DNA of 64,000 bases from Rebecca billardiae RCC1528 (taxonomy: Eukaryota > Protista > Haptophyta), in contig OZ251222.1 in NCBI GenBank assembly GCA_965240325.2, positions 3,348,001-3,412,000 of the forward strand, given 5' to 3'. The notes under the pieces were generated by a model. That model had not been told where the DNA came from and did no database searches. It worked only from the letters and a program-made list of their open reading frames with translations. Below, in pieces: positions 3,053 to 62,178 of the stretch (positions are counted from its first letter, which is position 1; each line of letters begins with the position of its first letter). The position numbers and the translations under genes were made by a program.

Positions 3053-3523
3053 GTCGCCTGTCGGGACGGCGGGAGGCGGAGGAGCGCAGCTGGTTGTCCG
3101 TGCGGCTGCTCGGCGCCAAGCGTGGCCCGTCGGCTGGGTTTGGTAGTCGGGCGGCGGTCCGGTCGGCGGTCGGGCAGGGCGAGGTGCGCCGTGCGGTCGG
3201 GCGGGAAAGCGGACGGCTGCTGGGCGAAACTCGCAGAACTCGCTCCTGTTCGCCAAAGCCGGTCACTGCCCGTCAACTCCCGGCGCGCGCTCACTTTTCT
3301 GCGGTCCGCGCCAAAAGCGAGCTGCCACACGCTCGGAACGCTGTCCGGGGGCGCGCTGCGAGCTCCGAGCTCCGAGCCCGTCCGGGCGGGGGTGCGGTCG
3401 GAGGGGCGCTGGAGGAGGGTATCGGGCGGCGGCGAAGCGGCGCCGGCAGTCATAACGCGATAACCGCCGCAGACTGCCAAACCCGCCACTCCCGTCGCGT
3501 CGGCCATCGCCCCAAAACACTCA

Positions 3524-4545
3524 GGGTCGTTCTTCCGAGCCCCCCCACGCTTTTTCCCCAGCCCGAGCCCGAACATTGTTGTATGAGGACCTATTGCGAA
3601 CGCGGGGGCGTGGAGGCCTCCCCAGGATGACGAAACTTGGCCGGGACCAAGTGTTGTTGGAAATCCAAACAACACTTGGTCCCGGCCAAATTTCGTCACA
3701 TACTATCTCGTCCCGAAAGATCGCAGGACGGAAGCTTCTGTGACTTCCAACATCGGCCCACGAGAGGGTCGAGAGCATGCCGTGCGTGCGTGCGGCGGTC
3801 GGCGGAGACAAGTACGACCGGCGCGTTCGCGCGCGCGCTCGTATGCTCGGCGGCGGTGGTGTTGAGGCTGGCCAGTCACGTGTGACGCCTGGCTGCGCTC
3901 GCGTGCTTGAGCGCAGCTTGTGCGGCGCAAGCCTCCGTTGTGTGATCTGACGTGCGCAGAATGCACTCGTCGCGCCTTGCGCCCGGAGCGTTTGAATTCG
4001 TAGAAGATTTCGACTCAGCCACGATGCACACGGTCGTGCGTGTCTCCAGAAGACACTTACGAGCAGGGCTCGACCGTGGCATGCCCACCATCTCCTCATA
4101 TCATCTCGCTTAGCTGTCTGCGCACACGCGACCAGCTCCACCGTGCTCGGCTGTCGGCGCCCGCTTGCGCGGTCGGTCGGTGGGACACCTGGTTGCCTAC
4201 ATTGCACACACGAGCTTCTCTTTGCAGATCAAGTGTGCGTTGGCGCTCTGACTGCCGCCCCTCGCCGACATCATGCGCACGAGAAGGGCCTGCACGTGCA
4301 CGACAGGGACGCTAGGGTCGCGGGCTGCCCTCGCTGCTTCTCCTAGGCTCCCTTGGACGAGCAGGTGCCGATCCTCCCGCAATCTCAATAGCTACCGGCG
4401 CAACTCCAAAACGGAAAGGAAATGCTCGCAAGAACGCCCGCGGCCCCTCGTTTTGAGCCCGAACATTTTTGTAAGCCACCCTAGACAAATGCTTCAGGAC
4501 AGATACCCGTCTGGGCGAGCTTGCGGGGGCTCGGAAGAACGACCC
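3524..4545. mobile_element. Non-autonomous PIF/Harbinger-type element (1022 bp)
   Basis: 21-bp perfect TIR GGGTCGTTCTTCCGAGCCCCC (3524-3544 / 4525-4545). 3-bp TSD TCA (3521-3523 / 4546-4548) in a C-TCA-G target context. No transposase ORF. Confidence 0.85.
3628..3698. repeat. Long hairpin/palindrome inside the Harbinger-type element
   Basis: 31-bp arms TGACGAAA(C/T)TTGGCCGGGACCAAGTGTTGTT with one mismatch; 9-nt centre GGAAATCCA. Confidence 0.9.
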
Positions 4546-5329
4546 TCAGCCTCAGCAGTAAGGTCTGGCGTTTGCCACTGGCGACTGCACACGGCAACAG
4601 GGGCGTTTGCGCCCTGTTGTCGTGTGCACACTGGGGCGCAAAAGGGGTCACCCTCAGGGGGTTTCGCACTGCTGTTGCCGTGTGCACCGGCCCGCTGTGG
4701 CCGTGCACACGGCAACAGGGCGCAAACGGCCCTGTTGCCGTGTGCAGGCGTGCATGGCTTGCGATGGCAGCCAGCCGTCAGCAGGGCGCCACGCCCACTG
4801 TTCGTTGGTAGGCTGGCCCGATGGCGTCGCGGAGCTCACGCGTACGGGGGAGGAGGGCATCGACGAGGAGACGACCAAGGGCGAGAAGCAGCAGGGGGCA
4901 CGCAGCACGGGGCTCGGAGCATGCCGCGAGCACGCGTGCCTCCACACCGTCGCACATCAACCTTGCTCGTAGCTGTGCGCTGTGCTGCCACTCATCTCAC
5001 CATCGCCCATGCTACGGGCGCGGCCGGGTGGTGGGCATCTACCTGTCGGCGCAGCACTGGCACCGGTGGTCGCCAGACACTCCTCGACTTGCTCTGCGCG
5101 TCACAGCAAGGAGACGGCAGCGGCACAGCTGTGTGAGCTCACAGATGAAGTGCTCCTCTGCTTTGCGAGGCTGAGAGGCTGAGCACGCGTGGCGAGCGCT
5201 GGCATTCCCCCGCATTCATGAGACCAACAGGTACATAGCCGTGCCCAGGAGCGCAGGACCAACCGCCGGGTGCTGCTTCAAACACCTGCGCCCCACTCTG
5301 CCGGCAGAATGAGGGGCGCTCTACTCTAT

Positions 5330-6750
5330 GCTGCACGCGGCAGCAGCAGCTGGGCCGCTGGGATGGTCCTGCACGGATGACGGCGGTCGCCGCGGCTGAC
5401 AGCTTGGTGTCACTGGTTCGAAGGGCCTGGACGACGGACGCGCCGAGCGTGGTGACGCTGCTCGATGCGCCCACGGCACTGCCAAGCGCACTGGAGCCGC
5501 TGCCTCGAGCACTACTGTGCCCGCGCCCAGCTTGGGCAGCAGCAGCTGCGCTCAACTCCACGCCGCGTGCCGTGGCAGCAGCAGGGATGGAGCCACGGCG
5601 GCCGGCGGCGGTCGACGGAGCTGTCGGCTCGGCGGTGCACGCCCGAGGGGCCTGGGCGGTGGGCGCACCGAACGCGGTGCCGCTGCTCGCCTCGCCCATG
5701 GCGCTGGAGCCGCTGCCATCCGACGCTGCTGCGCCCGCGCCCAGCTTGGGCAGCAGCGGCTGCGCTCGACTCCCCGCCGAGTGCGGCGGCAGCAGCAGGG
5801 ATGGTGCTACGGTGGGCGACGACGGTCGCTAGAGCTGAAAGCTCGGCGGTGCGCGCCCGAGGGGCCTGGGCGGTGGGCGCACCATACGCGGTGCCGCTGC
5901 TCGCCTCGCCCATGGCGCTCGAGCCGCTTCCATCCGACGCTGCTGCGCACGCGCCCAGCTCGGGCAGCAGCGGCTGCGCTCGACTCCGCGCAGAGTGCGG
6001 CGGCAGCAGCAGGGATGGTGCTACGGTGGGCGACGACGGTCGGTAGAGCTGAAAGCTCGGCGGTGCGCGCCTGAGGGGCCTGGGCGGTGGGCGCACCGAA
6101 CGCGGTGCCGCTGCTCGCCTCGCCCATGGCGCTGGAGCCGCTGCCATCCGACGCTGCTGCGCCCGCGCCAAGCTTGGGCAGCAGCGGCTGCGCTCGACTC
6201 CGCGCAGAGTGCGGCGGCAGCAGCAGGGATGCGGCGGCGGTCGACGGAGCTGTCAGCTCGGTGGTGCACGCCCGAGGGGCGTAGGCGCTGGACGCACCGA
6301 ACGCGGTGCCGCTGCTCGCCTCGCCCATGGCGCTGGAGCCGCTGCCATCCGACGCTGCTGCGCCCGCGCCCAGCTTGGGCAGCAGCGGCTGCGCTCGACT
6401 CCGCGCCGCGTGGGGCGGCAGCAGCAGGGATGGTGCTACGGTGGGCGACGACGGTCGCTAGAGCTGAAAGCTCGGCGGTGTGCGCCTGAGGGGCCTGGGC
6501 GGTGGGTGCATTGAGCGCGCTGACGCCTCTCGCCTCGCCCGGCGCGCTCGAGCCGCTGCCATCCGATGCTGCCGCGCCCGCGCCCTGTCGCGCCGAGTGC
6601 GGCTGCAGCATCAGGGATGGCGCCACGGCGGGCGGGCGGCGGTGCATGCAGCTAGCAGCTCGGTGCTGCACGCGCGAGGGGCCTGGGCGGCAGACGCGCG
6701 CAATGCAGTGACGCTGATGCACGCGTCAGGCGCGCTGGCCAGCCCCCGGA
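5330..6750 (+). repeat. Tandem array of a ~214-bp unit, about 6 units (left arm of A1)
   Basis: GCCCATGGCGCT recurs at ~5694, 5908, 6122 and 6323; flanking units are degenerate. Confidence 0.9.
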
Positions 6751-7489
6751 GCTGTTGCTACGACACTTCTTCTGTCCTGCTGCGAGCCGAGCCGCCAGCA
6801 GGTTCAGTGGGGCGGGCAATGCCGGTCAGCTCATATTCATAAGGCCGGCGGCGCAGACCAGTCGTAGCCCGGCAGGTAGGCGATGCAGAAGTTATCAGCA
6901 GCATCATGCATCGTCATCAGCACTACATCAGCATCCGCCTATAGACGAGTCGTACGTATAGAACTAGCTGCTCTTTATTATCCGACTAGCCGTTCAGAGC
7001 GGTAGTATACTCCGACTATACGTCGATCGATGCATTAGCCAGCCCCGGGGCGGCGGCTGTCCGACACTCTGCCGTCATGTGCGTATATAAGTGACTCTTA
7101 CTCCACCTAGCGGTCTATCCGGATCGGTACCCTGGCGGCGGTGTTGTCGTCTGTCCGCCGAGTCACAGCCTGACTCGCGTAGCTAGTCACTTATCAGTGA
7201 TGTGATGGTCTCGTCGTCCGCGTCCGGACCGTGTCGACGACAAGTCGTGCCGTGGGCCTGGCGGCTCACAGTGTAAGTTAGTAGTAGCTAACTCATCATC
7301 AATGTAAGAGCATCAGTAGTGAGCAGCAGCAGTAGCAGCTCGACTGCTGGCGTCATCACGACCGTGCTACACTCCGGCCGGCGCGACACGGTCACGGTCA
7401 GCTGGTCAGCAGTATATATGATACTTACACCGGGACCGTAGTACTGTAGAGTAGAGTACGTATACGTAGTTTTAATAACGACGACCGGT

Positions 7490-9620
7490 CGTCGGCGCGC
7501 GTGCCAAGCAGCACTCAGCACCGCCCGACCACCGCCGCCGGCCTGGCCGTGGCACCTCCCTGCTGCTACCACCGCATGCGGCGCGAAGCCTCTGGAGCGC
7601 AGCTGCTGCCAGGCCTGCCAGCTGCAGCCGTGCAGCGGCGCCGGGGCGCGGGCGCAGCGGCATCGGATGGCAGAGGCTCGAGCGCGCTACGGAACGAGGC
7701 GAGCGGCTACACCGCGCTCGGTGCGTCCAGCGCCCACGCCTCTCGGGTGGGCGCTGCCAAGCTTTCAGCTGCTGCGGCCGCCCGCCGTGGCACCATCCCT
7801 GCTGCTGCTGCCGCACGCGGCGCGGAGTCGAGCGCTGCTGCTGCTGCCCTGGCCGGGCGCGGGCGCAGCAGCACCTGATGGCAGCGGCTCCAGCGCTATG
7901 GGCGAGGCGAGCAGCGGCACCGCGCTCGGTGCGTCCAGCGCCCACGCCCCTCGGGCGTGCACCGCAGAGCTGCCGGCTGCAGCAACCGCCGCCGCCCGCC
8001 GTGCCACCATCCCTGCTGCTGCTGCCGCACGCGGTGCGGAGTCGAGCGCAGCCGCTGCTGCCCAAGCTGGGCGCGGGCGCAGCAGCGTCGGATGGCAGCG
8101 GCTCCAGCGCCATGGGCGAGGCGAGCAGCGGCACCGCGTTCGGTGCGCCCAGCGCCCAGGCCCCTCGGGCGTGCGCTGCCGAGCTTTCAGCTCTAGCGAC
8201 CGCCGCCGCCCGCCGTGGCACCATCCCTGCTGCTGCCGCCGCACTCTGCACGGAGTCGAGCGCAGCTGCTGCTGCCCAAGCTGGGCGCAAGCGCAGCAGC
8301 GTCGGATGGCAGGGCTCCAGCGCGCTGCGGGAGGCGAGCGGCGATGGCGCGCTCAGCGCGTCTGCAGCCCAGGCCCCTCGGGCGTGCGCCGCCGAGCTGC
8401 CGGCTGCAGCAACCGCCGCCGCCCACAGTGGCACCATCCCTGCTGCTGCTGCCGCACGCGGCGCGGAGTCGAGCGCCGCTGCTGCTGCTGCCCCAGCTGG
8501 GCGGGCGCACCACCACCGGATGGCAGCGGCTCGAGCGCGCTGCGGGAGACGAGCGGCGATGGCGCGCTCAGCGCGTCTGCAGCCCAGGCCCCTCGGGCGT
8601 GCGCCGCCGAGCTGCCGGCTGCAGCAACCGCCGCCGCCCACAGTGGCACCATCCCTGCTGCTGCTGCCGCACGCGGCGCGGAGTCGAGCGCCGCTGCTGC
8701 TGCTGCCCCAGCTGGGCGTGGGCGCACCAGCACCGGATGGCAGCGGCTCGAGCGCCATGGGCGAGGCGAGCAGCGGCACCGCGCTCGGTGCGTCCAGCGC
8801 CCACGCCCCTCGGGCGCACACAGCCGAGCTTTCAGCTCCAGCAACCCACGCCGCCCGCCGTGGCACCATCCCTGCTGCTGCCGCCGCACTCGGCGCGGAG
8901 TCGAGCGCAGCCGCTGCTGCCCAAGCTTGGCGCGTGCGCAGCAGCGTCGGATGGCAGCGGCTCGAGCGCCATGGGCGAGGCGAGCAGCGGCACCGCGTTC
9001 GGTGCGCCCACCGCCCAGGCCCCTCGGGCGCGCACCGCCGAGCTTTCAGCTCTAGCGACCGTCGTCGCCCACCGTAGCACCATCCCTGCTGCTGCCGCCG
9101 CACTCTGCGCGGAGTCGAGCGCAGCCGCTGCTGCCCAAGCTGGGCGCGGGCGCAGCAGCGTCGGATGGCAGCGGCTCCAGCGCGCTGCGGGAGGCGAGCA
9201 GTGACACCGCGCTCGGTGCATCCAATGCCCGGGCCCCTCGGGCGCGCACCGCCGAGCTGACAGCTGCGCCGACCCACGCCGCCCGCCGTGGCACCATCCC
9301 TGCTGCTGCAGCCAATGCGGCGCGGAGTCAAGTGCAGCTGCAGCTGGGCCCCAGCTGGGTCGGGCACAGCAGCACCAGATGGCAGCGGCTCCAGCGCGCT
9401 GGGCAGTGCCATGGTCGTGTGGAGCAACGTCACCGCGCTCGGCGCGTCCATCGACGAGGCCCCTCGAGCGAGCGACACCGAGCTGTCATCTGCGGCGAAA
9501 GCCGTCATCCGCCGCGGGACCATTCCAGCAGCTGCTGCCGCATGCAGCGCAGACTCGAGCGTGGCTGCCGCTGGTGTTGGCGGCCCGGATGGGCGCGGGT
9601 GCAGCATCATCAGGTGCCCG
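7490..9620 (-). repeat. Inverted tandem array of the same ~214-bp unit, about 9 units (right arm of A1)
   Basis: GATGGCAG(C)GGCT recurs at ~212-217 bp spacing from ~7665 to ~9378. Confidence 0.9.
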
Positions 9621-10781
9621 CGACCCCATCGCGGCGGGCGCGATGGGCCAGGTCGCTGCGTTTGGCGCGCCATTGCCCAGGCCGTTCAAGCGAGCACCAC
9701 CGAGCTGTTAGTTGGAGCAACTGCTGCCGCCCGTCATGATACTGTACGTACTGCTGCTGCAGCATCAACAGCGCCGCTGTTACCAGCAGCGCTGCGCTCG
9801 TGTATCCGAAGCAGCACCGCATTGATGGTCCTGCGGTCTGAGTAGGGGAGTATGCCAGTAGCTCGCATGCACCTGGAGTGCAGTCCATGCCTGTACTGCC
9901 TCGCCGAGTACTACTAGAGTAGTAGGACCTCATGTGCTCACGCAGCTGAGCCGCTGCCGTCTCCTTGCTGTGACGCGCAGAGCAAGTCGAGGAGTGTCTG
10001 GCGACCACCGGTGCCAGTGCTCTGCCGACAGGTAGATGCCCACCACCCGGCCGCGCCCGTAGCATGGGCGATGGTGAGATGAGTGGCAGCACAGCGCACA
10101 GCTACGAGCAAGGTTGATGTGCGACGGTGTGGAGGCACGCGTGCTCGCGGCATGCTCCGAGCCCCGTGCTGCGTGCCCCCTGCTGCTTCTCGCCCTTGGT
10201 CGTCTCCTCGTCGATGCCCTCCTCCCCCGTACGCGTGAGCTCCGCGACGCCATCGGGCCAGCCTACCAACGAACAGTGGGCGTGGCGCCCTGCTGACGGC
10301 TGGCTGCCATCGCAAGCCATGCACGCCTGCACACGGCAACAGGGCCGTTTGCGCCCTGTTGCCGTGTGCACGGCCACAGCGGGCCGGTGCACACGGCAAC
10401 AGCAGTGCGAAACCCCCTGAGGGTGACCCCTTTTGTGGCCGAACCTGCCAAGGTCCATTTCCCGTAGTCGGCATCTGGCAACGTGCCCGCGAGCCATTTT
10501 TTTATTCCGCGACGCGCCATTTCGCCTATTTGGCACCTCGCAAGGTGCCGCTCCCGCGGCCTCCGGCCCGGACCGATCTTGACCTTGCTGCGCCCCAAAC
10601 AGGGCGCAAACGCCCCTGTTGCCGTGTGCAGTCGCCAGTGGCAAACGCCAAACCTGGCTGGCCTCAGCATGTGATGATGATCATGCGACATGCCCATTGC
10701 CCTGCCGGGCGACGCCGACGGTGCAGCCTGCAGGCCGCGCCTGCTCGTGAAACTCGGATTCGGAAGGGCCGCCGCCGGCGC

Positions 10782-35236: not shown

Positions 35237-36339
35237 GCCGGGCCGGCGCCTCGCAAGCCGCGCCACACCAGGGCCGGGGCACTGCTGCTAGCCGCACCGT
35301 AACCTGCGTTTACTTGCTTGTGAGGGCTGGCGCCTGGCAGAGGCGCCCCCGTGCAGGCGTGCACTCCTGTGCGAGTGTGCGCGTACCCGCTTTATCTGGT
35401 ATATGATAGATACTCGCGCGGGTGAAGTAGTCAAAACAAAACTTACGGGTATGCTGGCTTATAGGGGAATTTAAAAAGGGTATGCTGGCTTATTCAGCGG
35501 TCGTAACGCTACTATCATATATTCTGGAAACCCACGAGAACAAAGGCACGACTTCACGCTGGGGACCCAGTAAGGTCTGGCGTTTGCCACTGGCGACTGC
35601 ACACGGCAACAGGGGCGTTTGCGCCCTGTTGTCGTGTGCACACTGGGGCGCAAAAGGGGTCACCCTCAGGGGGTTTCGCACTGCTGTTGCCGTGTGCACC
35701 GGCCCGCTGTGGCCGTGCACACGGCAACAGGGCGCAAACGGCCCTGTTGCCGTGTGCAGGCGTGCATGGCTTGCGATGGCAGCCAGCCGTCAGCAGGGCG
35801 CCACGCCCACTGTTCGTTGGTAGGCTGGCCCGATGGCGTCGCGGAGCTCACGCGTACGGGGGAGGAGGGCATCGACGAGGAGACGACCAAGGGCGAGAAG
35901 CAGCAGGGGGCACGCAGCACGGGGCTCGGAGCATGCCGCGAGCACGCGTGCCTCCACACCGTCGCACATCAACCTTGCTCGTAGCTGTGCGCTGTGCTGC
36001 CACTCATCTCACCATCGCCCATGCTACGGGCGCGGCCGGGTGGTGGGCATCTACCTGTCGGCGCAGCACTGGCACCGGTGGTCGCCAGACACTCCTCGAC
36101 TTGCTCTGCGCGTCACAGCAAGGAGACGGCAGCGGCACAGCTGTGTGAGCTCGCAGATGAAGTGCTCCTCTGCTTTGCGAGGCTGAGAGGCTGAGCACGC
36201 GTGGCGAGCGCTGGCATTCCCCCGCATTCATGAGACCAACAGGTACATAGCCGTGCCCAGGAGCGCAGGACCAACCGCCGGGTGCTGCTTCAAACACCTG
36301 CGCCCCACTCTGCCGGCAGGCTGAGGGGCGCTCTACTCT

Positions 36340-38200
36340 ATGCTGCACGCGGCAGCAGCAGCTGGGCCGCTGGGATGGTCCTGCACGGATGACGGCGGTC
36401 GCCGCGGCTGACAGCTTGGTGTCACTGGTTCGAAGGGCCTGGACGACGGACGCGCCGAGCGTGGTGACGCTGCTCGATGCGCCCACGGCACTGCCAAGCG
36501 CGCTGGAGCCGCTGCCTCGAGCACTACTGTGCCCGCGCCCAGCTTGGACAGCAGCAGCTGCGCTCAACTCCGCGCCGCGTGCCGTGGCAGCAGCAGGGAT
36601 GGTGCCACGGCGGCCGGCGGCGGCCGACGGAGCTGTCGGCTCGGCGGTGCACGCCCGAGGGGCCTGGGCGGTGGGCGCACCGAACGCGGTGCCGCTGCTC
36701 GCCTCGCCCATGGCGCTGGAGCCGCTGCCATCCGACGCTGCTGCGCCCGCGCCCAGCTTGCGCAGCAGCGGCTGCGCTCGACTCCGCGCAGAGTGCGGCG
36801 GCAGCAGCAGGGATGGTGCTACGGTGGGCGACGACGGTCGCTAGAGCTGAAAGCTCGGCGGTGTGCGCCCGAGGGGCCTGGGCGGTGGGCGCACCGAACG
36901 CGGTGCCGCTGCTCGCCTCGCCCATGGCGCTCGAGCCGCTGCCATCCGACGCTGCTGCGCCCGCGCCCAGCTTGGGCAGCAGCGGCTGCGCTCGACTCCG
37001 CGCAGAGTGCGGCGGCAGCAGCAGGGATGGTGCTACGGTGGGCGACGACGGTCGCTAGAGCTGAAAGCTCGGCGGTGCGCGCCCGAGGGGCCTGGGTGGT
37101 GGGCGCACCGACGCGGTGCCGCTGCTCGCCTCGCCCATGGCGCTCGAGCCGCTGCCATCCGACGCTGCTGCGCCCGCGCCCAGCTTGGGCAGCAGCGGCT
37201 GCGCTCGACTCCGCGCAGAGTGCGGCGGCAGCAGCAGGGATGGTGCTACGGTGGGCGACGACGGTCGCTAGAGCTGCAAGCTCGGCGGTGCGCGCCCGAG
37301 GGGCCTGGGCGGTGGGTGCACCGAACGCGGTGCCGCTGCTCGCCTCGCCCATGGCGCTGAAGCCGCTGCCATCCGACGCTGCTGCGCCCGCGCCCAGCTT
37401 GGGCAGCAGCGGCTGCGCTCGACTCCGCGCAGAGTGCGGCGGCAGCAGCAGGGATGGTGCTACGGTGGGCGACGACGGTCGCTAGAGCTGAAAGCTCGGC
37501 GGTGTGCGCCCGAGGGGCCTTGGCGGTGGGCGCACCGAACGCGGTGCCGCTGCTCGCCTCGCCCATGGCGCTCGAGCCGCTGCCATCCGACGCTGCTGCG
37601 CACGCGCCAAGCTTGGGCAGCAGCGGCTGCGCTCGACTCCGCGCAGAGTGCGGCGGCAGCAGCAGGGATGGTGCTACGGTGGGCGACGACGGTCGCTTGA
37701 GCTGAAAGCTCGGCGGTGCGCGCCCGAGGGGCCTGGGCGGTGGGCGCACCGAACGCGGTGCCGCTGCTCGCCTCGCCCATGGCGCTGGAGCCGCTGCCAT
37801 CCGACGCTGCTGCGCCCGCGCCCAGCTTGGGCAGCAGCGGCTGCGCTCGACTCCGCGCCGCGTGCGGCGGCAGCAGCAGGGATGGTGCTGCGGTGGGCGA
37901 CGACGGTCGCTAGAGCTGAAAGCTCAGCGGTGTGCGCCTGAGGGGCCTGGGCGGTGGGTGCATTGAGCGCGCTGACGCCTCTCGCCTCGCCCGGCGCGCT
38001 CGAGCCGCTGCCATCCGATGCTGCCGCGCCCGCGCCCTGTCGCGCCGAGTGCGGCTGCAGCATCAGGGATGGCGCCACGGCGGGCGGGCGGCGGTGCATG
38101 CAGCTAGCAGCTCGGTGCTGCACGCGCGAGGGGCCTGGGCGGCAGACGCGCGCAATGCAGTGACGCTGATGCACGCGTCAGGCGCGCTGGCCAGCCCCCG
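36340..38200 (+). repeat. ~214-bp tandem array, about 8 units (left arm of A2)
   Basis: The GAGCCGCTGCC marker recurs from ~36506 to ~38002 at ~214-bp steps. Confidence 0.9.
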
Positions 38201-38961
38201 GAGCTGTCGCTACGACACTTCTTCTGTCCCGTGCTGCGAGCCGAGCCGCCAGCAGGTTCCGGGGCGGGCCAATGCCGGTCAGCTCATATTCATAAGGCCG
38301 GCGGCGCAGACCAGTCGTAGCCCGGCAGGTAGGCGATGCAGAAGTTATCAGCAGCATCATGCATCGTCATCACTACATCAGCATCCGCCTAGACGAGTAC
38401 GTAAGAACTACGACTATCTTTAAATTATATATATATACACGCGTACTACGGCACCGAGCATATATCTCGAATCGTCATCGTCAATCTCCGACTAGCCGTT
38501 CAGAGCGGTACTCCGACTACGACGATGCATCAGCCAGCCCCGGGGCGGCGGCTGTCCGACACTCTGCCGTCAGAATGTGCGTATATAAGTGACTCTACTT
38601 ACTCCACCTAGCGGTCTATCCGGATCGGTACCCTGGCGGCGGTGTTGTCGTCTGTCCGCCGTCACAGACTGACTCGCGTAGCTAGTCACTTATCAGTGAT
38701 GTGATGGTCTCGCCGTCCGCGTCCGGACTGTCGACGACAAGTTGTGCTGGGCCTGGCGGCTCACAGTGTAAGTTAGTAGTAGCTAACTCATCAATGTAAG
38801 AGCAGCAGTAGTGAGCAGCAGCAGTAGCAGCTCGACTGCTGGCGTCATCACCGTGCTACGTACACTCCGGCGCGACACGGTCACGGTCAGCTGGTCAGCA
38901 GTCTATACTCTTACGCCGGGACCGTAGCAGTACTGTAGTAGAGTACGTATACCAATAACGT

Positions 38962-38980
38962 ATATATATATATATATATA
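38962..38980. repeat. (TA)n microsatellite in the centre of A2
   Basis: Read directly; absent at the equivalent position of A1. Confidence 0.85.
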
Positions 38981-38999
38981 GTTTTAACGACGACCGGTC

Positions 39000-41770
39000 G
39001 GCGCGCGTGCCAAGCAGCACCCAGCACCGCCCGACCACCGCCGCCAGCCTGGCCGTGGCACCTCCCTGCTGCTACCACCGCATGCGGCGCGAAGCCTCCG
39101 GAGCGCAGCTGCTGCCAGGCCTGCCAGCTGCAGCCGTGCAGCGGCGCCGGGGCGCGGGCGCAGCGGCATCGGATGGCAGAGGCTCGAGCGCGCTACGGAA
39201 CGAGGCGAGCGGCTACACCGCGCTCGGTGCGTCCAGCGCCCACGCCTCTCGGGTGGGCACTGCCAAGCTTTCAGCTGTTGCGGCCGCCCGCCGTGGCACC
39301 ATCCCTGCTGCTGCTGCCGCACGCGGCGCGGAGTCGAGCGCTGCTGCTGCTGCCCTGGCCGGGCGCGGGCGCAGCAGCACCGGATGGCAGCGGCTCCAGC
39401 GCTATGGGCGAGGCGAGCAGCGGCACCGCGCTCGGTGCGTCCAGCGCCCACGCCCCTCGGGCGTGCACCGCCGAGCTGCCGGCTGCAGCAACCACCGCCG
39501 CCCGCCGTGGCACCATCCCTGCTGCTGCTGCCGCACGCGGTGCGGAGTCGAGCGCAGCCGCTGCTGCCCAAGCTGGGCGCGGGCGCAGCAGCGTCGGATG
39601 GCAGCGGCTCCAGCGCCATGGGCGAGGCGAGCAGCGGCACTGCGTTCTGTGCGCCCAGCGCCCAGGCTCCTCGGGCGTGCGCTGCCGAGCTTCCAGCTGC
39701 GTCGACCGCCGCCGCCCGCCGTGGCACCATCCCTGCTGCTGCCGCCGCACGCGGCGCGGAGTCAGGCGCGGCTGCTGCTGCCAAAGCTGGGCGCGGGTGC
39801 AGCAGCATCGGATGGCAGCGGCTCGAGCGCGCTGCGGGAGGCCAGCGGGGACACCGCGCTCGGTGCGTCCAACGACCAGGCCCCTCGGGCGCACACCGCC
39901 GAGCTTTCAGCTCCAGCGACCGCCGCCGCCCGCCGTGGCACCATCCCTGCTGCTGCTGCCGCACGCGGCGCGGAGTCGAGCGCAGCCGCTGCTGCCCAAG
40001 CTGGGCGCGGGCGCAGCAGCGTCGGATGGCAGCGGCTCGAGCGCCATGGGCGAGGCGAGCAGCGGCACCGCGCTCGGTGCGCCCACCGCCCAGGCCCCTC
40101 GGGCGCACACAGCCGAGCTTTCAGCTCCAGCGACCGCCGCCGCCCGCCGTGGCACCATCCCTGCTGCTGCTGCCGCACGCGGCGCGGAGTCGAGCGCAGC
40201 CGCTGCTGCCCAAGCTTGGCGCGTGCGCAGCAGCGTCGGATGGCAGCGGCTCGAGCGCCATGGGCGAGGCGAGCAGCGGCACCGCGCTCGGTGCGCCCAC
40301 CGCCCAGGCCCCTCGGGCGCACACAGCCGAGCTTTCAGCTCCAGCGACCGCCGCCGCCCACAGTGGCACCATCCCTGCTGCTGCTGCCGCACGCGGCGCG
40401 GAGTCGAGCGCCGCTGCTGCTGCTGCCCCAGCTGGGCGTGGGCGCACCAGCACCGGATGGCAGCGGCTCGAGCGCCATGGGCGAGGCGAGCAGCGGCACC
40501 GCGCTCGGTGCGTCCAGCGCCCACGCCCCTCGGGCGCACACTGCCGAGCTTTCAGCTCCAGCGACCCACGCCGCCCGCCGTGGCACCATCCCTGCTGCTG
40601 CCGCCGCACTCGGCGCGGAGTCGAGCGCAGCCGCTGCTGCCCAAGCTTGGCGCGGGCGCAGCAGCGTCGGATGGCAGCGGCTCGAGCGCCATGGGCGAGG
40701 CGAGCAGCGGCGCCGCGTTCGGTGCGCCCACCGCCCAGGCCCCTCGGGCGCACACAGCCGAGCTTTCAGCTCCAGCGACCGCCGCCGCCCACAGTGGCAC
40801 CATCCCTGCTGCTGCTGCCGCACGCGGCGCGGAGTCGAGCGCCGCTGCTGCTGCTGCCCCAGCTGGGCGTGGGCGCACCAGCACCGGATGGCAGCGGCTC
40901 GAGCGCCATGGGCGAGGCGAGCAGCGGCACCGCGCTCGGTGCGTCCAGCGCCAACGCCCCTCGGGCGCACACTGCCGAGCTTTCAGCTCCAGCGACCCAC
41001 GCCGCCCGCCGTGGCACCATCCCTGCTGCTGCCGCCGCACTCGGCGCGGAGTCGAGCGCAGCCGCTGCTGCCCAAGCTTGGCGCGGGCGCAGCAGCGTCG
41101 GATGGCAGCGGCTCGAGCGCCATGGGCGAGGCGAGCAGCGGCGCCGCGTTCGGTGCGCCCACCGCCCAGGCCCCTCGGGCGCACACAGCCGAGCTTTCAG
41201 CTCCAGCGACCGCCGCCGCCCACCGTGGCACCATCCCTGCTGCTGCTGCCGCACGCGGCGCGGAGTCTAGCGCAGCCGCTGCTGCCCAAGCTTGGCGCGG
41301 GCGCAGCAGCGTCGGATGGCAGCGGCTCCAGCGCGCTGCGGGAGGCGAGCAGTGACACCGCGCTCGGTGCATCCAATGCCCGGGCCCCTCGGGCGCGCAC
41401 CGCCGAGCTGACAGCTGCGCCGACCCACGCCGCCCGCCGTGGCACCATCCCTGCTGCTGCAGCCAATGCGGCGCGGAGTCAAGTGCAGCTGCAGCTGGGC
41501 CCCAGCTGGGCGCGGGCACAGCAGCACCAGATGGCAGCGGCTCCAGCGCGCTGGGCAGTGCCGTGGTCGTGTGGAGTAACGTCACCGCGCTCGGCGCGTC
41601 CATCGACGAGGCCCCTCGAGCGAGCGACACCGAGCTGTCATCTGCGGCGAAAGCCGTCATCCGCCGCGGGACCATTCCAGCAGCTGCTGCCGCATGCAGT
41701 GCAGACTCGAGCGTGGCTGCCGCTGGTGTTGGCGGCCCGGATGGGCGCGGGTGCAGCATCATCAGGTGCC
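39000..41770 (-). repeat. Inverted ~214/217-bp tandem array, about 12 units (right arm of A2)
   Basis: The marker recurs from ~39171 to ~41530; spacing alternates 217/214 in the 40300-41200 part. Confidence 0.9.
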
Positions 41771-43764
41771 AGCGACCCCATCGCGGCGGGCGCGATGGGC
41801 CAGGTCGCTGCGTTTGGCGCGCCATTGCCCAGGCCGTTCAAGCGAGCAACACCGAGCTGTTAGTTGGAGCAACTGCTGCCGCCCGTCATGATACTGTACG
41901 TACTGCTGCTGCAGCATCAACAGCGCCGCTGTTACCAGCAGCGCTGCGCTCGTGTATCCGAAGCAGCACGGCATTGATGGTCCTGCGGTCTGAGTAGGGG
42001 AGTATGCCAGTAGCTCGCATGCACCTGGAGTGCAGTCCATGCCTGTACTGCCTCGCCGAGTACTACTAGAGTAGTAGGACCTCATGTGCTCACGCAGCTG
42101 TGCCGCTGCCGTCTCCTTGCTGTGACGCGCAGAGCAAGTCGAGGAGTGTCTGGCGACCACCGGTGCCAGTGCTGCGCCGACAGGTAGATGCCCACCACCC
42201 GGCCGCGCCCGTAGCATGGGCGATGGTGAGATGAGTGGCAGCACAGCGCACAGCTACGAGCAAGGTTGATGTGCGACGGTGTGGAGGCACGCGTGCTCGC
42301 GGCATGCTCCGAGCCCCGTGCTGCGTGCCCCCTGCTGCTTCTCGCCCTTGGTCGTCTCCTCGTCGATGCCCTCCTCCCCCGTACGCGTGAGCTCCGCGAC
42401 GCCATCGGGCCAGCCTACCAACGAACAGTGGGCGTGGCGCCCTGCTGACGGCTGGCTGCCATCGCAAGCCATGCACGCCTGCACACGGCAACAGGGCCGT
42501 TTGCGCCCTGTTGCCGTGTGCACGGCCACAGCGGGCCGGTGCACACGGCAACAGCAGTGCGAAACCCCCTGAGGGTGACCCCTTTTGCGCCCCAGTGTGC
42601 ACACGACAACAGGGCGCAAACGCCCTGTTGCCGTGTGCAGTCGCCAGTGGCAAACGCCAAACCTGGCTGGGGGACCAGCCCGTCGCAGGCCTTTTTTTGA
42701 CGCCCCCCTAACCCGTCTGTCTGTCTGTTTGTCGGTCACATAAGCGCAATTCGCGTACCCGCTTACGCGCTCGATAGGACAAAAGCCGCTCGTCGTTCGG
42801 TCAAAAGCCGCTCGTCGTTCGGCGCTTTGCGTACTCACATTCGCGCGAATCGCATCGGCCCATTCGTCGTGTCGCGAGTTCACACTTCACATTCACACGA
42901 ACCGTCACTTTCTCGCTAGACATTTCACGAGCGAAAGGGCGCGCTGATATTGGCACGCGGGTATCATCTTGCATTTGACATACGAGCGTCGGAGCGGCAA
43001 GCCAGCAACCTCGCGCGGCCTCGGCGTCCCGGGTCCGAAGCCGACAGAGAGCGAGAGCCCACGAGCCCGAGGCGCCCTCGTCCTTGCGGTCGGTCGCGCG
43101 ACGAACGGCTCGCGTGCGGGGCCAGCGAGCAACGCGGGGCGCGCGGCGGGCTCACGCGCGATGCCGCCCACCACGCGCACGCGTGCGAACCCGCCGGCTC
43201 GGGCGACACGCGCCGCCTCAGCTCGAGCACGAGCGCGAGGCGTGGCGCCGGCCCGGTCGGGCGGCGGAGGGCTCGAGCTGCCGACTGCGCGCGACGAGCG
43301 CCCTCGCGTGCGGTGCCAGCGGATGAAGCGGCACGCGCGGCGGGCGCATACGCGCAGGGCCGCCATCCACGCGCGAGCGCGCGACTGCGTGCCTTCCACG
43401 AGCTGCAGCAGGCGGCCGCGGGTTGGTCGGCGGACGGCAAGGTCGGCGGAGTGCCGCCCGTCCGGCGTTTCGCTTGGGCGCGGGCCACACTCTCACTCAC
43501 AGCGCGGGGCGTGGTGCTGCAGACGGGACAGAGACGTGCACACGCGCGCGCGTCGTCAGCCCCGCCGCTGCGCCCCTGTGGCGCCCATGGCCGAGCGTCG
43601 GAATTCCGAGCTGGGCCACCGGCCCGGCGTGCCATCGTGCGTTTCAGAAACAGGTTTCCAGCCCAAGTTGACGCGCAGCGCCAACCCATATATATAGTGG
43701 GTAACTGCGCGACTCAATATAATGACAGAACGATAGTGGCAACCGCCGCCGTCGTCGTCGCGCT

Positions 43765-50814: not shown

Positions 50815-53800
50815 ATGGCGCGACGGATGCGCCCCGGGGCGTCAGGTGCAACCACCACGGTGCATAAGATTGCGCAGCCCCGCGCGCTTATCTGCCACCT
50901 GTGCGGGCGGCAGTACGGCTCGGCATCGCTGTCGATCCACCTGAAGACGTGCGAGCAGCGGTACGAGCAGGAGCATGGCAAGCGTGCACCGCGACCGCCG
51001 GACGTGCCGCTGTCCGCAGGCGCGGACGCGCAGAACGAGGCGGCGTTTGCGACGTTTCAGAACGAGGCGTTGGTGCCGTGCGAGCACTGCGGGCGCACGT
51101 TCCTGCCGGACCGCCTGCAGGTGCACCTGCGCAGCTGTCGGCCGAAGGGCTCGCCGTATGGCCCGCCGCCTCGGCAGCCGTCCAGCCAGCTGCGCTCGAC
51201 CATGCCCGCCTCGGCGACTCCCTCGCCCAGCGGGCGCGCGTCGTCGCCGGGCCCGGGCAGCCGCGCTCCGCGGATGCTGATCTGCCACCTGTGCGGGCGG
51301 CAGTACGGCTCGAGCTCGCTGTCCATCCACCTGAAGACGTGCGAGCAGCGGTACGAGCAGGAGCACGGCAAGCGCGCACCGCCACCGCCGGACGTGCCGC
51401 TGTCCGCAGGCGCGGACGCGCAGAACGAGGCGGCGTTTGCGACGTTTCAGAACGAGGCGTTGGTGCCGTGCGAGCACTGCGGGCGCACGTTCCTGCCGGA
51501 CCGCCTGCGGGTGCACCTGCGCAGCTGCAGAGGCGACAGCTCGAGCCGCCGCCCATCGACCGCGCGCAGCCGGCTGCCGTCGATGGACGATGGTGGCGGC
51601 GCGGAGGGCCGGCGATCGGCGCCGCCTGCGTCGAGACGCATGTCTTCTCCAGGCCCTGGCAGCCGTGCTCCGCGGATGCTGATCTGCCACCTGTGCGGGC
51701 GGCAGTACGGCTCGAGCTCGCTGTCCATCCACCTGAAGACGTGCGAGCAGCGGTACGAGCAGGAGCACGGCAAGCGTGCACCGCCACCGCCGGACGTGCC
51801 GCTGTCCGCAGGCGCGGACGCGCAGAACGAGGCGGCGTTTGCGACGTTTCAGAACGAGGCGTTGGTGCCGTGCGAGCACTGCGGGCGCACGTTCCTGCCG
51901 GACCGCCTGCGGGTGCACCTGCGCAGCTGCAGAGGCGACAGCTCGAGCCGCCGCCCATCGACCGCGCGCAGCCGGCTGCCGTCGATGGACGATGGTGGCG
52001 GCGCGGAGGGCCGGCGATCGGCGCCGCCTGCGTCGCGGCGCATGTCTTCTCCAGGCCCTGGCAGCCGCGCTCCGCGGATGCTGATCTGCCACCTATGCGG
52101 GCGGCAGTACGGCTCGAGCTCGCTGTCCATCCACCTGAAGACGTGCGAGCAGCGGTACGAGCAGGAGCACGGCAAGCGCGCACCGCCACCGCCGGACGTG
52201 CCGCTGTCCGCAGGCGCGGACGCGCAGAACGAGGCGGCGTTTGCGACGTTTCAGAACGAGGCGTTGGTGCCGTGCGAGCACTGCGGGCGCACGTTCCTGC
52301 CGGACCGCCTGCAGGTGCACCTGCGCAGCTGTCGGCCGAAGGGCTCGCCGTATGGCCCGCCGCCTCGGCAGCCGTCCAGCCAGCTGCGCTCGACCATGCC
52401 CGCCTCGGCGACTCCCTCGCCCAGCAGCAGGCGCATGTCTTCTCCAGGCCCGGGCAGCCGCGCTCCGCGGATGCTGATCTGCCACCTGTGCGGACGGCAG
52501 TACGGCTCGAGCTCGCTGTCCATCCACCTGAAGACGTGCGAGCAGCGGTACGAGCAGGAGCATGGCAAGCGTGCACCGCGACCGCCGGACGTGCCGCTGT
52601 CCGCAGGCGCGGACGCGCAGAACGAGGCGGCGTTTGCGACGTTTCAGAACGAGGCGTTGGTGCCGTGCGAGCACTGCGGGCGCACGTTCCTGCCGGACCG
52701 CCTGCAGGTGCACCTGCGCAGCTGCAGAGGCGACAGCTCGAGCCGCCGCCCATCGACCGCGCGCAGCCGGCTGCCGTCGATGGACGATGGTGGCGGCGCG
52801 GAGGGCCGGCGATCGGCGCCGCCTGCGTCGCGGCGCATGTCTTCTCCAGGCCCTGGCAGCCGCGCTCCGCGGATGCTGATCTGCCACCTATGCGGACGGC
52901 AGTACGGCTCGAGCTCGCTGTCCATCCACCTGAAGACGTGCGAGCAGCGGTACGAGCAGGAGCACGGCAAGCGCGCACCGCCACCGCCGGACGTGCCGCT
53001 GTCCGCAGGCGCGGACGCGCAGAACGAGGCGGCGTTTGCGACGTTTCAGAACGAGGCGTTGGTGCCGTGCGAGCACTGCGGGCGCACGTTCCTGCCGGAC
53101 CGCCTGCAGGTGCACCTGCGCAGCTGTCGGCCGAAGGGCTCGCCGTATGGCCCGCCGCCTCGGCAGCCGTCCAGCCAGCTGCGCTCGACCATGCCCGCCT
53201 CGGCGACTCCCTCGCCCAGCGGGCGCGCGTCGTCGCCGGGCCCGGGCAGCCGCGCTCCGCGGATGCTGATCTGCCACCTGTGCGGGCGGCAGTACGGCTC
53301 GAGCTCGCTGTCCATCCACCTGAAGACGTGCGAGCAGCGGTACGAGCAGGAGCACGGCAAGCGCGCACCGCCACCGCCGGACGTGCCGCTGTCCGCAGGC
53401 GCGGACGCGCAGAACGAGGCGGCGTTTGCGACGTTTCAGAACGAGGCGTTGGTGCCGTGCGAGCACTGCGGGCGCACGTTCCTGCCGGACCGCCTGCAGG
53501 TGCACCTGCGCAGCTGTCGGCCGAAGGGCTCGCCGTATGGCCCGCCGCCTCGGCAGCCGTCCAGCCAGCTGCGCTCGACCATGCCCGCCTCGGCGACTCC
53601 CTCGCCCAGCGGGCGCGCGTCGTCGCCGGGCCCGGGCAGCCGCGCTCCGCGGATGCTGATCTGCCACCTGTGCGGGCGGCAGTACGGCTCGAGCTCGCTG
53701 TCCATCCACCTGAAGACGTGCGAGCAGCGGTACGAGCAGGAGCACGGCAAGCGCGCACCGCCACCGCCGGACGTGCCGCTGTCCGCAGGCGCGGACGCGC

Positions 53801-53919
53801 AGAACGAGGCGGCGTTTGCGACGTTTCAGAACGAGGCGTTGGTGCCGTGCGAGCACTGCGGGCGCACGTTCCTGCCGGACCGCCTGCAGGTGCACCTGCG
53901 CAGCTGTCGGCCTCGCTGA
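50815..53919 (+). CDS. Tandem C2HC zinc-finger protein (zf-C2HC_2, ZNF474/ZC2HC1-like): 8 units with 2 fingers each
   Basis: CHLCGRQYG...SLSIHLKTC and CEHCGRTF.PDRL.VH.RSC repeat eight times. Unit spacings 390, 402, 402, 393, 402, 390 and 390 bp are all multiples of 3. Confidence 0.92.
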   Translation: MARRMRPGASGATTTVHKIAQPRALICHLCGRQYGSASLSIHLKTCEQRYEQEHGKRAPRPPDVPLSAGADAQNEAAFATFQNEALVPCEHCGRTFLPDRLQVHLRSCRPKGSPYGPPPRQPSSQLRSTMPASATPSPSGRASSPGPGSRAPRMLICHLCGRQYGSSSLSIHLKTCEQRYEQEHGKRAPPPPDVPLSAGADAQNEAAFATFQNEALVPCEHCGRTFLPDRLRVHLRSCRGDSSSRRPSTARSRLPSMDDGGGAEGRRSAPPASRRMSSPGPGSRAPRMLICHLCGRQYGSSSLSIHLKTCEQRYEQEHGKRAPPPPDVPLSAGADAQNEAAFATFQNEALVPCEHCGRTFLPDRLRVHLRSCRGDSSSRRPSTARSRLPSMDDGGGAEGRRSAPPASRRMSSPGPGSRAPRMLICHLCGRQYGSSSLSIHLKTCEQRYEQEHGKRAPPPPDVPLSAGADAQNEAAFATFQNEALVPCEHCGRTFLPDRLQVHLRSCRPKGSPYGPPPRQPSSQLRSTMPASATPSPSSRRMSSPGPGSRAPRMLICHLCGRQYGSSSLSIHLKTCEQRYEQEHGKRAPRPPDVPLSAGADAQNEAAFATFQNEALVPCEHCGRTFLPDRLQVHLRSCRGDSSSRRPSTARSRLPSMDDGGGAEGRRSAPPASRRMSSPGPGSRAPRMLICHLCGRQYGSSSLSIHLKTCEQRYEQEHGKRAPPPPDVPLSAGADAQNEAAFATFQNEALVPCEHCGRTFLPDRLQVHLRSCRPKGSPYGPPPRQPSSQLRSTMPASATPSPSGRASSPGPGSRAPRMLICHLCGRQYGSSSLSIHLKTCEQRYEQEHGKRAPPPPDVPLSAGADAQNEAAFATFQNEALVPCEHCGRTFLPDRLQVHLRSCRPKGSPYGPPPRQPSSQLRSTMPASATPSPSGRASSPGPGSRAPRMLICHLCGRQYGSSSLSIHLKTCEQRYEQEHGKRAPPPPDVPLSAGADAQNEAAFATFQNEALVPCEHCGRTFLPDRLQVHLRSCRPR

Positions 53920-54427
53920 CAACGAGGCCGGGCAAGTCTGATGATTAATAATCGCGGACACGACCCGGGCCCAGCGCATCACTACCGTGCTACTCTTATT
54001 TGCAGCAGTGCGCGTCCGGTTATACTCGTTTAATTAGCTGCTGCTTATTCATCACGACTCTCTGACGGAGCAGTACTACTACAGTACAGTCACAATATAT
54101 ATATAGCTACTAATAGCAGTAATAAGCGTCGTCAGTAGTCAATATGATCGACGACGGTCTAAGCCGAGTCGTCAGCAGAGTGAGAGGCAGAGAGTTACTC
54201 ACTACCGAGACCGACTGCTACGAATACAATAAATTATGACACGCACTCACGCAGTCAGTCACTTTCACAATTGATCTGAGTCTCAATGATGGTCGTCAGA
54301 CACCGTACTATCGCGGGACCTGCGGACGACTGGCATCCCCGGGGGGGACCCGGATGAGCTCGACTGTGTTGGGCAAAGCATTCCGGTGCGACCCAGACCG
54401 CGGCGGTGTGTCATCGTGCGCACGTCC

Positions 54428-55711: not shown

Positions 55712-56818
55712 CAAGGGAGGTCCGGGCCGGGAGCTCCCAGCGAGCGGCCAGCGCGACATCACCTCAAGGTTTTTTCCTGAGCGCCGGGCGGCAGCGGCGG
55801 CGAGGGCGGTGCTCCGCTGGCGGGGCGCGCACGGGGCACGGCGCTGCGGGCGCGGATGTGCCCGCAGAGCCGGCGCGTGCGGACGGGCTGTTGCGGGAGA
55901 GCATCTGGCGCCCTCCTGCGCCGCGCGCATTGCGCCACGCCTCTTTCGCCTTGACTCAGGGCAGCGCGCACATGCGCGCCGCGTCAAGGCCAGCCTTGCC
56001 GCGCCGCAGCCGACCGCGCGCGCGCCGTGCGCGGCGTGGTCGGGAAGGAACGGGCGCGGCTGCCGGGCGAGATGGCGACATCACGTGCGCACGCCATGCC
56101 GCCCCGCCACGCCTTGACGAGCGTGTCGCCGGTCCGTTTGCACGCCTCTTCGAGTTGTCTCAAATGGTCTGCACGGCCTCGCGGTCGCGACCCTTGTCGG
56201 GACGATCATTGAGACACAGAACAGTGCCAGACGGGCACGCGGACTACTCTTACATGAATGTCCATCACCACGTGGCCATGTAGAAGTGCTGGGTGCGACG
56301 CTTTCCTCGCGCTGATGCACTTTCATCATCTTTTTCGAGCTCAGGTCTGGCTTCAGGCACGGCAAGAAATCAGCACTCGTCAACAGCTGTGCGGATCCGT
56401 TATCGCGCCCTTTCGCGGCGCCGCGGGACGACATGGCGTGCGCACGTGATGTCGCCATCTCGCCCGGCAGCCGCGCCCGTTCCTTCCCGACCACGCCGCG
56501 CACGGCGCGCGTGCGGTCGGCTGCGGCGCGGCAAGGCTGGCCTTGACGCAGCGCGCATGTGCGCGCTGCCCTGAGTCAAGGCGAAAGAGGCGTGGCGCAA
56601 TGCGCGCGGCGCAGGAGGGCGCCAGATGCTCTCCCGCAACAGCCCGTCCGCACGCGCCGGCTCTGCGGACACATCCGCGCCCGCAGCGCCGTGCCCCGTG
56701 CGCGCCCCGCCAGCGGAGCACCGCCCTCGCCGCCGCTGCCGCCCGGCGCTCAGGAAAAAACCTTGAGGTGATGTCGCGCTGGCCGCTCGCTGGGAGCTCC
56801 CGGCCCGGACCTCCCTTG
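55712..56818. mobile_element. Small foldback DNA transposon, family B copy 1 (1107 bp)
   Basis: 387-bp TIRs beginning CAAGGGAGGTCCGGGCCGGG (55712-56098 / 56432-56818) around a 333-bp core. 7-bp TSD GCGCGGG (55705-55711 / 56819-56825). Confidence 0.93.
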
Positions 56819-59390: not shown

Positions 59391-60502
59391 CAAGGGAGGT
59401 CCGGGCCGGGCCGGGAGCTCCCAGCGAGCGGCCAGCGCGACATCACCTCAAGGTTTTTTCCTGAGCGCCGGGCGGCAGCGGCGGCGAGGGCGGTGCTCCG
59501 CTGGCGGGGCGCGCACGGGGCACGGCGCTGCGGGCGCGGATGTGTCCGCAGAGCCGGCGCGTGCGGACGGGCTGTTGCGGGAGAGCATCTGGCGCCCTCC
59601 TGCGCCGCGCGCATTGCGCCACGCCTCTTTCGCCTTGACTCAGGGCAGCGCGCACATGCGCGCTGCGTCAAGGCCAGCCTTGCCGCGCCGCAGCCGACCG
59701 CACGCGCGCCGTGCGCGGCGTGGTCGGGAAGGAACGGGCGCGGCTGCCGGGCGAGATGGCGACATCACGTGCGCACGCCATGTCGTCCCGCGGCGCCGCG
59801 AAAGGGCGCGATAACGGATCCGCACAGCTGTTGACGAGTGCTGATTTCTTGCCGTGCCTGAAGCCAGACCTGAGCTCGAAAAAGATGATGAAAGTGCATC
59901 AGCGCGAGGAAAGCGTCGCACCCAGCACTTCTACATGGCCACGTGGTGATGGACATTCATGTAAGAGTAGTCCGCGTGCCCGTCTGGCACTGTTCTGTGT
60001 CTCAATGATCGTCCCGACAAGGGTCGCGACCGCGAGGCCGTGCAGACCATTTGAGACAACTCGAAGAGGCGTGCAAACGGACCGGCGACACGCTCGTCAA
60101 GGCGTGGCGGGGCGGCATGGCGTGCGCACGTGATGTCGCCATCTCGCCCGGCAGCCACGCCCGTTCCTTCCCGACCACGCCGCGCACGGCGCGCGCGCGG
60201 TCGGCTGCGGCGCGGCAAGGCTGGCCTTGACGCGGCGCGCATGTGCGCGCTGCCCTGAGTCAAGGCGAAAGAGGCGTGGCGCAATGCGCGCGGCGCAGGA
60301 GGGCGCCAGATGCTCTCCCGCAACAGCCCGTCCGCACGCGCCGGCTCTGCGGGCACATCCGCGCCCGCAGCGCCGTGCCCCGTGCGCGCCCCGCCAGCGG
60401 AGCACCGCCCTCGCCGCCGCTGCCGCCCGGCGCTCAGGAAAAAACCTTGAGGTGATGTCGCGCTGGCCGCTCGCTGGGAGCTCCCGGCCCGGACCTCCCT
60501 TG
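59391..60502. mobile_element. Small foldback DNA transposon, family B copy 2 (1112 bp), inverted relative to B1
   Basis: Near-identical to B1 with the core reversed and an extra 5-bp GCCGG in one TIR. 7-bp TSD GGTAGCC (59384-59390 / 60503-60509). Confidence 0.93.
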
Positions 60503-61187: not shown

Positions 61188-62178
61188 TGCAACAGGTCTT
61201 TGTCAGCATGGCACGGGGGATCGCTCGCTCGGGCTCACGACTCTCTGTTCTTCGCTTCAAGGTCGAGCTGCTGTGCTGAGAGTATGAGTCCGCCAGCACG
61301 GAGTGAGCGCGCGGTGGTCCGGTTGGCCCGGGCGGCGGCGGACTGGGCACTGGCCACTGGGCCGGACTCGCCGCCGCCCGACAGTCCCAAGGCCGAGGCC
61401 CGCGGCGCCTGCCGTCGGCGTCAGGGCCAGGTCGGCTGCGCGACTGCTCGCGCGCCGTCCATCCAGCCTCCAGACGACCGTCCGAATCGGAATATGCGCC
61501 GCTGGCACCGCTGGGCAGAGTGCAGACCATGTATTTATTCATGTATCATATATATATATGTATATTAATAAAATATCATCTCAGTTTTTACAATCAAACT
61601 GAACCCTATTAAAGTATTTATAATCAAGCTATAAGCTCAAGACGTCGTAATACGATTACGACGACAGTCTTATGATACAGAGTCAGACATCAATATACTT
61701 CCGCGTCCGCCGGCGGCGTCCGCGCGCCACGACGCCGCCGTTCATTACGCCGTTCTGCCGTTCAGTGAGTGATTCACTATGATTCACTAATCACTGTCTG
61801 AGACTGTAGCTAGTCATGCACTGTCGAGTCGGTAACTACGTTGACTCATGTGACTGATGTCTGATGAATTCAGTCAGATGTACGCAGTGACGAGAGTTAC
61901 TCCGTGAGTGAGAGCTTATAAATCATATGGCTTAGCAGAATAAATATCAGTCTCACTGCTGAGTATGACAGTCATATATATAACGAGTAATATATGACCG
62001 CGTTCCGCGGTCTTTTTCCGTAGAACTAACGTAGTTCGGGGCCCGCGGTGCACCCTCCGTCGGCTGCTGTCTCAGTCTGACATGTGTAACAGTTCGCCTG
62101 AGCTGCCACCGCCAACTCAGTCACTGCCGCCCACCGGGCCGGCGGGCCGAGGACTGTCGCCGCGGGCCGCCGCGGGGA

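Follow-up and report, generated by a model that had tools for sequence, protein, structure and literature searches.

The 64,000-nucleotide window analysed here (contig OZ251222.1 of the haptophyte Rebecca billardiae RCC1528, positions 3,348,001 to 3,412,000 of the forward strand, or G000:C1:3348001-3412000 in our numbering) carries two copies, at 4556-10660 and 35568-42669, of what is almost certainly a family of non-autonomous cut-and-paste DNA transposons with terminal inverted repeats (TIRs). The family is of the foldback type, in which a variable middle lies between very long inverted arms with internal repeats, and in the assembly searched (72 Mb in 41 contigs, very GC-rich) we found 29 copies of it, which total 212.6 kb or 0.3% of the genome. 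A malonyl-CoA:ACP transacylase gene of the window is nearest to proteins of Pavlovales (81-85%, those of Diacronema lutheri and Pavlovales CCMP2436 among them), compared with ~70% for other algae, and this one gene suggests a Pavlovales host. We think it reasonably probable that the family is moved in trans by a transposase of the P superfamily. The first-pass annotation had described the two window copies as a recently mobile, non-autonomous family of the P/Galileo type; the coordinates, ends and target site duplications (TSDs) that it gave were all exact, and the recent mobility is well supported by the 29 dispersed copies, their TSDs and the empty sites. What is new is the Galileo/Tetris design of a foldback with satellite arrays in a haptophyte; in its architecture, its TSD and its likely superfamily the family is of a known kind.

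Target Sites and Proof of Insertion

Each window copy lies between the two halves of its own perfect 7-bp TSD on the plus strand, as had been predicted: GCCTCAG for copy 1 (4549-4555 and 10661-10667) and GGGGACC for copy 2 (35561-35567 and 42670-42676). Throughout the family the TSD is exactly 7 bp in 28 of the 29 copies and 6 bp in one, including two subfamily C copies that seemed to lack a TSD at first and showed one of 7 bp once a shared 4-bp insertion at their left end was allowed for. Since a chance 7-mer match is estimated from base composition at about 1 in 10,000 per element, this frequency is far above chance. A TSD of 8-9 bp, set beforehand as a result that would speak against the family assignment, was found in none of the copies. 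In addition, three copies are nested in other repeats whose empty paralogues carry the 7-mer only once. One of the three is window copy 2, whose empty site is found in a paralogous host repeat at G000:C32, near 897 kb, identical across the 71 bases shown. The single 7-mer at these empty sites means that the duplication was made by the insertion itself. The target is weakly palindromic outside the TSD (GCT-N7-AGC): of 56 sites with the strands pooled, 26 have T/A beside the TSD (p ~5e-6, an approximate value because of the pooling). The GTANTAC consensus of Galileo targets is absent from the family TSDs, the bias lying beside the TSD instead. The claimed likeness to Galileo is confined to the architecture.

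Architecture of the Two Window Copies

Both copies are built in the order of a TIR of ~580 bp, arm-specific sequence, a 214-bp array, a spacer of 800-850 bp, a longer inverted array and the second TIR. In copy 1, the left TIR (4556-5138, plus strand, ~583 bp), whose outer 190 bp form a nested palindrome, is followed by the left array (5354-6716, plus strand, seven unit hits, with a TRF core at 5491-6585), the non-coding central spacer (6716-7514, 57% GC, with many short tandem duplications), the right inverted array (7547-9622, minus strand, 11 unit hits) and the right TIR (9936-10660, minus strand), which is interrupted at 10449-10587 by a 139-bp insertion with CAAGGTC-type inverted ends, adjoined by a small deletion. 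Copy 2 has its left TIR at 35568-36150 (plus strand), a left array of nine unit hits at 36366-38168 (plus strand), a spacer of 56% GC at 38168-39020, a right inverted array of 14 unit hits at 39053-41774 (minus strand), which includes a 428-bp dimer duplication, and an intact right TIR at 42088-42669 (minus strand) that is 99.5% identical to the left one.

These measurements agree with the earlier claims of opposed 214-bp arrays and of a 585-bp TIR (~580 bp, at 99% identity). The arrays are, however, unequal and non-mirror, with an arm-to-arm identity of ~80-94%, and the ends are imperfect mirrors: in subfamily A, to which both window copies belong, the left end is CAGTAAGGTC and the right end CAGCCAGGTT, and all copies have mismatches between the two at positions 4, 5 and 10. 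The spacer, called AT-rich from the letters alone, is so only in relative terms, as its GC content indicates. The long open reading frames (ORFs) of the region, called spurious, are indeed products of the GC-rich arrays, and a Pfam search of two of these array ORFs gave no match.

The Family and Its Relatives in the Genome

A search with the terminal 85 bp yielded 17 complete copies of subfamily A, of 5.6-7.4 kb, and a terminal 15-mer added subfamily B (two copies) and subfamily C (ten copies), both of which have their ends and the 214-bp arrays in common with A. The copies start with CAGTA, CAGCC or CAATA, and all 29 have CA..TG termini. Subfamily C has the left end CAATAAGGT and arms that are 94-96% alike over 2-3.5 kb. 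The extra size of the larger copies comes from nested elements. One copy (L011) has a nested insertion of ~730 bp after left TIR base 103, bounded by CTTGCAAACC inverted ends and by the 7-bp TSD CCTCAGG, which represents a third family with 7-bp TSDs, not of the CA..TG kind; two subfamily C copies (L018 and L028) hold other TIR elements in (TA)n runs within their spacers.

The arms extend beyond the family as defined by its ends. An inner-TIR 21-mer has 113 matches in the genome, against 6 for a control, and these correspond to ~54 elements, whereas the terminal motif finds only ~57 ends; therefore, ~25 further elements contain the inner arm without the family ends. They comprise group D, with elements of 7-10 kb and opposed arrays, for instance at C1:199.4-207.5 kb, and group E, with at least eight elements of near-identical length (~4.2 kb) that contain the inner TIR motif under other ends, for instance at G000:C1:2415731-2419405, where there is a single array motif, and at similar sites on C3, C5, C16, C19 and C20. 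Six metagenome matches to the 21-mer did not extend beyond 34 bp and were taken as chance.

Age, Divergence and Array Dynamics

Among 15 copies of subfamily A we counted 0.2 substitutions per kb in the left TIR, 7.6 in the right TIR and ~33 in the spacer, which also has 18 indels per kb, the spacer figures being dependent on the alignment. The variants of the spacer, the inner arm and the right TIR group the A copies into the same lineages, and this concordance means that the differences are real and that the spread is recent, having taken place in at least five lineages. Sequencing noise was ruled out as the source of the spacer differences, given that the variants are common to lineages. The near-invariance of the left TIR compared with the right one possibly reflects constraint or one-way conversion. 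Private variants that occur in both arms of a single copy, as seen in subfamily C, are the mark of conversion between arms.

The arrays contain 5-15 units per arm and vary by 214 or 428 bp at a time, with 428-bp dimer duplications. Short tandem duplications are five times as frequent in the element spacer as in its shuffles. Three to five times more tandem duplications of 3-6 bp than in shuffles were also observed in AT-richer intergenic DNA of the window (54000-54330 and 61540-62000), which weakens the idea of the spacer as a special mutation hot spot; the excess of short duplications may be a genome-wide mutational signature.

Candidate Transposase Binding Sites

Within its outer 190 bp each TIR contains a 14-bp motif five times, at positions 32, 59, 117, 150 and 177, and this motif changes in step among subfamilies A, B and C. 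As judged from the sequence, these five motifs are candidate binding sites for the transposase. Two subfamily C copies at unrelated loci (L019/L020 and L026/L027) carry the same insertion of 4.6-5.5 kb after right-TIR base 38; either the element jumped together with this insertion, in which case little contiguous right end is needed, or a passenger inserts there site-specifically. The insertion has long direct repeats, and its ends resemble window positions 3414-3518.

P-Type Transposase Genes in the Genome

In line with the suggested superfamily, the genome does contain two P-type transposase genes, but no family end was found near either of them. The first gene (G000:C21:1532845-1536810, L036) is an open frame of 1322 codons whose protein shows PF21787, PF21788 and PF21789 in order, only PF21787 being above the cut-off, together with the D, D, DxxH, E catalytic motifs. 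The best fold match of its structural model (pLDDT 82) is the Drosophila P transposase 6P5A (E 7e-18), far ahead of RAG1 and Hermes, with 17% identity in the structural alignment. The second gene (G000:C11:2635938-2636564) has a 926-codon open frame. HMMER found 648 relatives of the C21 protein, and a word-index homolog search with it gave no match. The nearest relatives of the P-type proteins are algal or metagenomic, at 30-43% identity, one of them from Aureoumbra, and the contigs of two C21 relatives (4-7 kb) showed no TIRs. Downstream of the C21 gene lies a repeat that is unrelated to the family.

In line with the claim that the elements lack a transposase, none was detected in the family: the C21 protein had no tblastn match in any of the 29 copies, and the P profile and the hAT domain matched none of them. 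The group E elements likewise gave no match to this profile or this domain. The canonical hAT dimerisation domain has a single match in the genome, and this one contains a stop.

Proposed Mechanism

We suggest that a P-superfamily transposase supplied in trans would recognise each TIR by its five 14-bp motifs, all within the outermost 190 bp, excise the element and join it at a 7-nucleotide staggered cut. Repair of the gap with the sister chromatid as template would then increase the copy number, and conversion from arm to arm would maintain and lengthen the TIRs, with the arrays and the spacer travelling as passengers. A TSD of 7-8 bp and CA..TG termini are the rule in the P superfamily, and the termini are not exclusive to it. 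By the Repbase rule, an autonomous partner would have the same TSD and ends alignable with those of the family at positions 1-11. We counted in favour of such an enzyme the 7-bp TSD in 28/29 copies together with the CA..TG termini in 29/29, the empty sites, the palindromic target bias, the traits in common with Galileo, the P-type genes on C21 and C11, the stop in the sole hAT domain match and the co-variation of the subfamily C arms. A tentative proposal, which we hold to be rather doubtful, is that the family has its active partner in the open-frame gene on C21 or in that on C11.

Several observations weigh against a P-type enzyme. Both P-type genes lie outside the mapped elements, among the matches listed, and a search for the terminal motif that allowed up to 3 mismatches found it near neither of them. 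What these enzymes actually move could be other CA..TG families of the genome with 7-bp TSDs. No THAP domain was found in the 1007 residues of the C21 protein that were read. With up to 3 mismatches allowed, the 214-bp units contain no match to the candidate 14-bp motif, and therefore the arrays are probably passengers. Finally, the hATv elements of haptophytes also combine 7-bp TSDs and non-identical TIRs with proteins that Pfam does not see (PMC10138859).

Alternative Explanations

This last point leads to the most serious alternative, a divergent hAT-type enzyme with 7-bp TSDs, either of the Repbase hATv kind, such as Shanks of Tisochrysis lutea, or of the hATw kind, which we regard as unlikely. 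hATv elements have been reported from haptophytes only (three of them; PMC10138859), and Repbase does contain hAT families with 7-bp TSDs (PMC4455052). Moreover, the ends of our family begin with CAG or CAA, as those of many hAT elements do, and Ace of T. lutea begins with CAGTG. However, Shanks has TAGGG ends and TIRs of 26 bp, and the CAGTA, CAGCC and CAATA ends do not match over 11 terminal bases the Shanks terminus TAGGGCGGTCA, Shanks being the one hATv member compared. The end rule of hAT elements is YARNG, which the family ends break at position 5. Still less likely, in our view, is a transposase that is undescribed or very divergent and that the ~4.2-kb group E may encode. The near-equal lengths of these at least eight elements, their inner TIR motif, the 2-3 kb of each that are unexplained (with one array motif in the C1 copy) and their position outside the P profile and hAT domain matches would suit such a source, yet their outer ends are unlike the A or C ends, which makes them poor partner candidates.

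The same three-part arm plan with ~220-bp tandem repeats is found in Tetris, and most foldbacks have been assigned to Mutator (PMC4079207), so that a Mutator or Foldback-type element like Tetris or FB has to be considered as well. Nevertheless, the TSDs of Tetris are variable, at 8-10 bp (PMC4079207), and with exactly 7 bp in 28/29 copies and CA..TG ends our family does not have the TSD of 8-11 bp of a Mutator or Tetris-like element, which makes this origin very improbable. As for an assembly artefact, or a satellite duplication without transposition, long hairpins may trouble long-read assembly; against this, the 29 copies lie in unrelated flanks with their own TSDs, there are empty paralogous sites and spacer variants shared by lineages, and TIR sequence is also present in independent public runs, so that we give this explanation practically no weight. 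In the public runs (X1 and X2), pieces of the TIR appear at low depth, and no contig spans an insertion site.

Other Repeats of the Window

The left TSD of copy 1 is abutted by a 1-kb element (3521-4549) with 25-bp inverted ends starting with GGGTCG and a possible TCA duplication, which looks PIF/Harbinger-like by eye. Further upstream, one contig from public run X1 connects 3102 directly with 3444 and so omits 341 bp, with a short side of 31 bases. A second foldback family, of 1.1 kb, is present in two copies of opposite orientation (55712-56818 and 59391-60502), with TIRs of 400 bp, CAAGGGAGG ends and the 7-bp TSDs GCGCGGG and GGTAGCC, and a relative of it is nested in a subfamily C copy with the TSD GCAGAGC. 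At 50886-53912 there is a 402-bp tandem repeat in an open frame, with units of 134 codons that start, by eye, with a C2HC-like zinc-finger pattern; this is probably a coding repeat.

Significance

In the literature searched, outside which lie Repbase Reports and most subscription journals, no P-type or foldback elements are described for Pavlovales. The long spurious ORFs from 29 copies matter for the annotation of this genome, and near-identical copies of 6-7 kb could give rise to rearrangements, like those that Galileo seeds in flies. If the P-type gene on C21 or C11 is indeed the active partner, the Galileo design would have evolved in an alga independently of flies, and groups D and E would be the same arms under different ends. 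The alga would also offer an active P-type foldback system for testing the role of long TIRs and internal arrays; in Galileo such a test did not succeed because an active enzyme was lacking (PMC3688188).

Comparison with Known Systems

Galileo has TSDs of 7 bp (PMC3573991, PMC4168063), or of 7-8 bp, and a GTANTAC target consensus (PMC4168063). Its TIRs reach 1.25 kb, its internal tandem repeats measure ~210 bp, and most of its copies are non-autonomous with two TIRs (PMC3573991, PMC4168063); the repeats hold secondary THAP sites (PMC3688188). Our family resembles it in the 7-bp TSD, the long TIRs, the internal repeats of variable number and similar unit length, the several subfamilies per genome, the prevalence of two-TIR non-autonomous copies, the TIR extension and the palindromic target motif. 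In contrast, Galileo arms reach at most ~1.26 kb with 0-3 units, compared with arms of 2-3.5 kb in subfamily C and 5-15 units per arm in the family, which shows no GTANTAC preference, has its candidate motif outside the tandem repeats, contains no transposase remnants and lives in a haptophyte host. The Galileo family is defined by its transposase, of the Galileo clade and with a THAP domain, inside the element, and a conserved terminal 40 bp is a further mark of membership; in our family no coding copy was found.

Tetris of Drosophila virilis has the same succession of an outer domain, a ~220-bp repeat array, an inner domain and a non-coding middle, and its transposase is likewise not known; it differs by its TSDs of 8-10 bp, AT-rich repeats and suggested Mutator origin (PMC4079207), whereas our repeats are GC-rich. 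The hATv element Shanks is similar in the 7-bp TSD, the non-identical ends, the haptophyte host and the non-autonomous derivatives, and dissimilar in its TAGGG ends, its 26-bp TIRs and its two ORFs, with foldback arms or arrays not described for it (PMC10138859). As modelled, the C21 protein has its fold and catalytic motifs in common with the Drosophila P transposase (6P5A), its gene being unlinked to the family. In summary, the family works like Galileo and is built like Tetris, and we assign it to neither.

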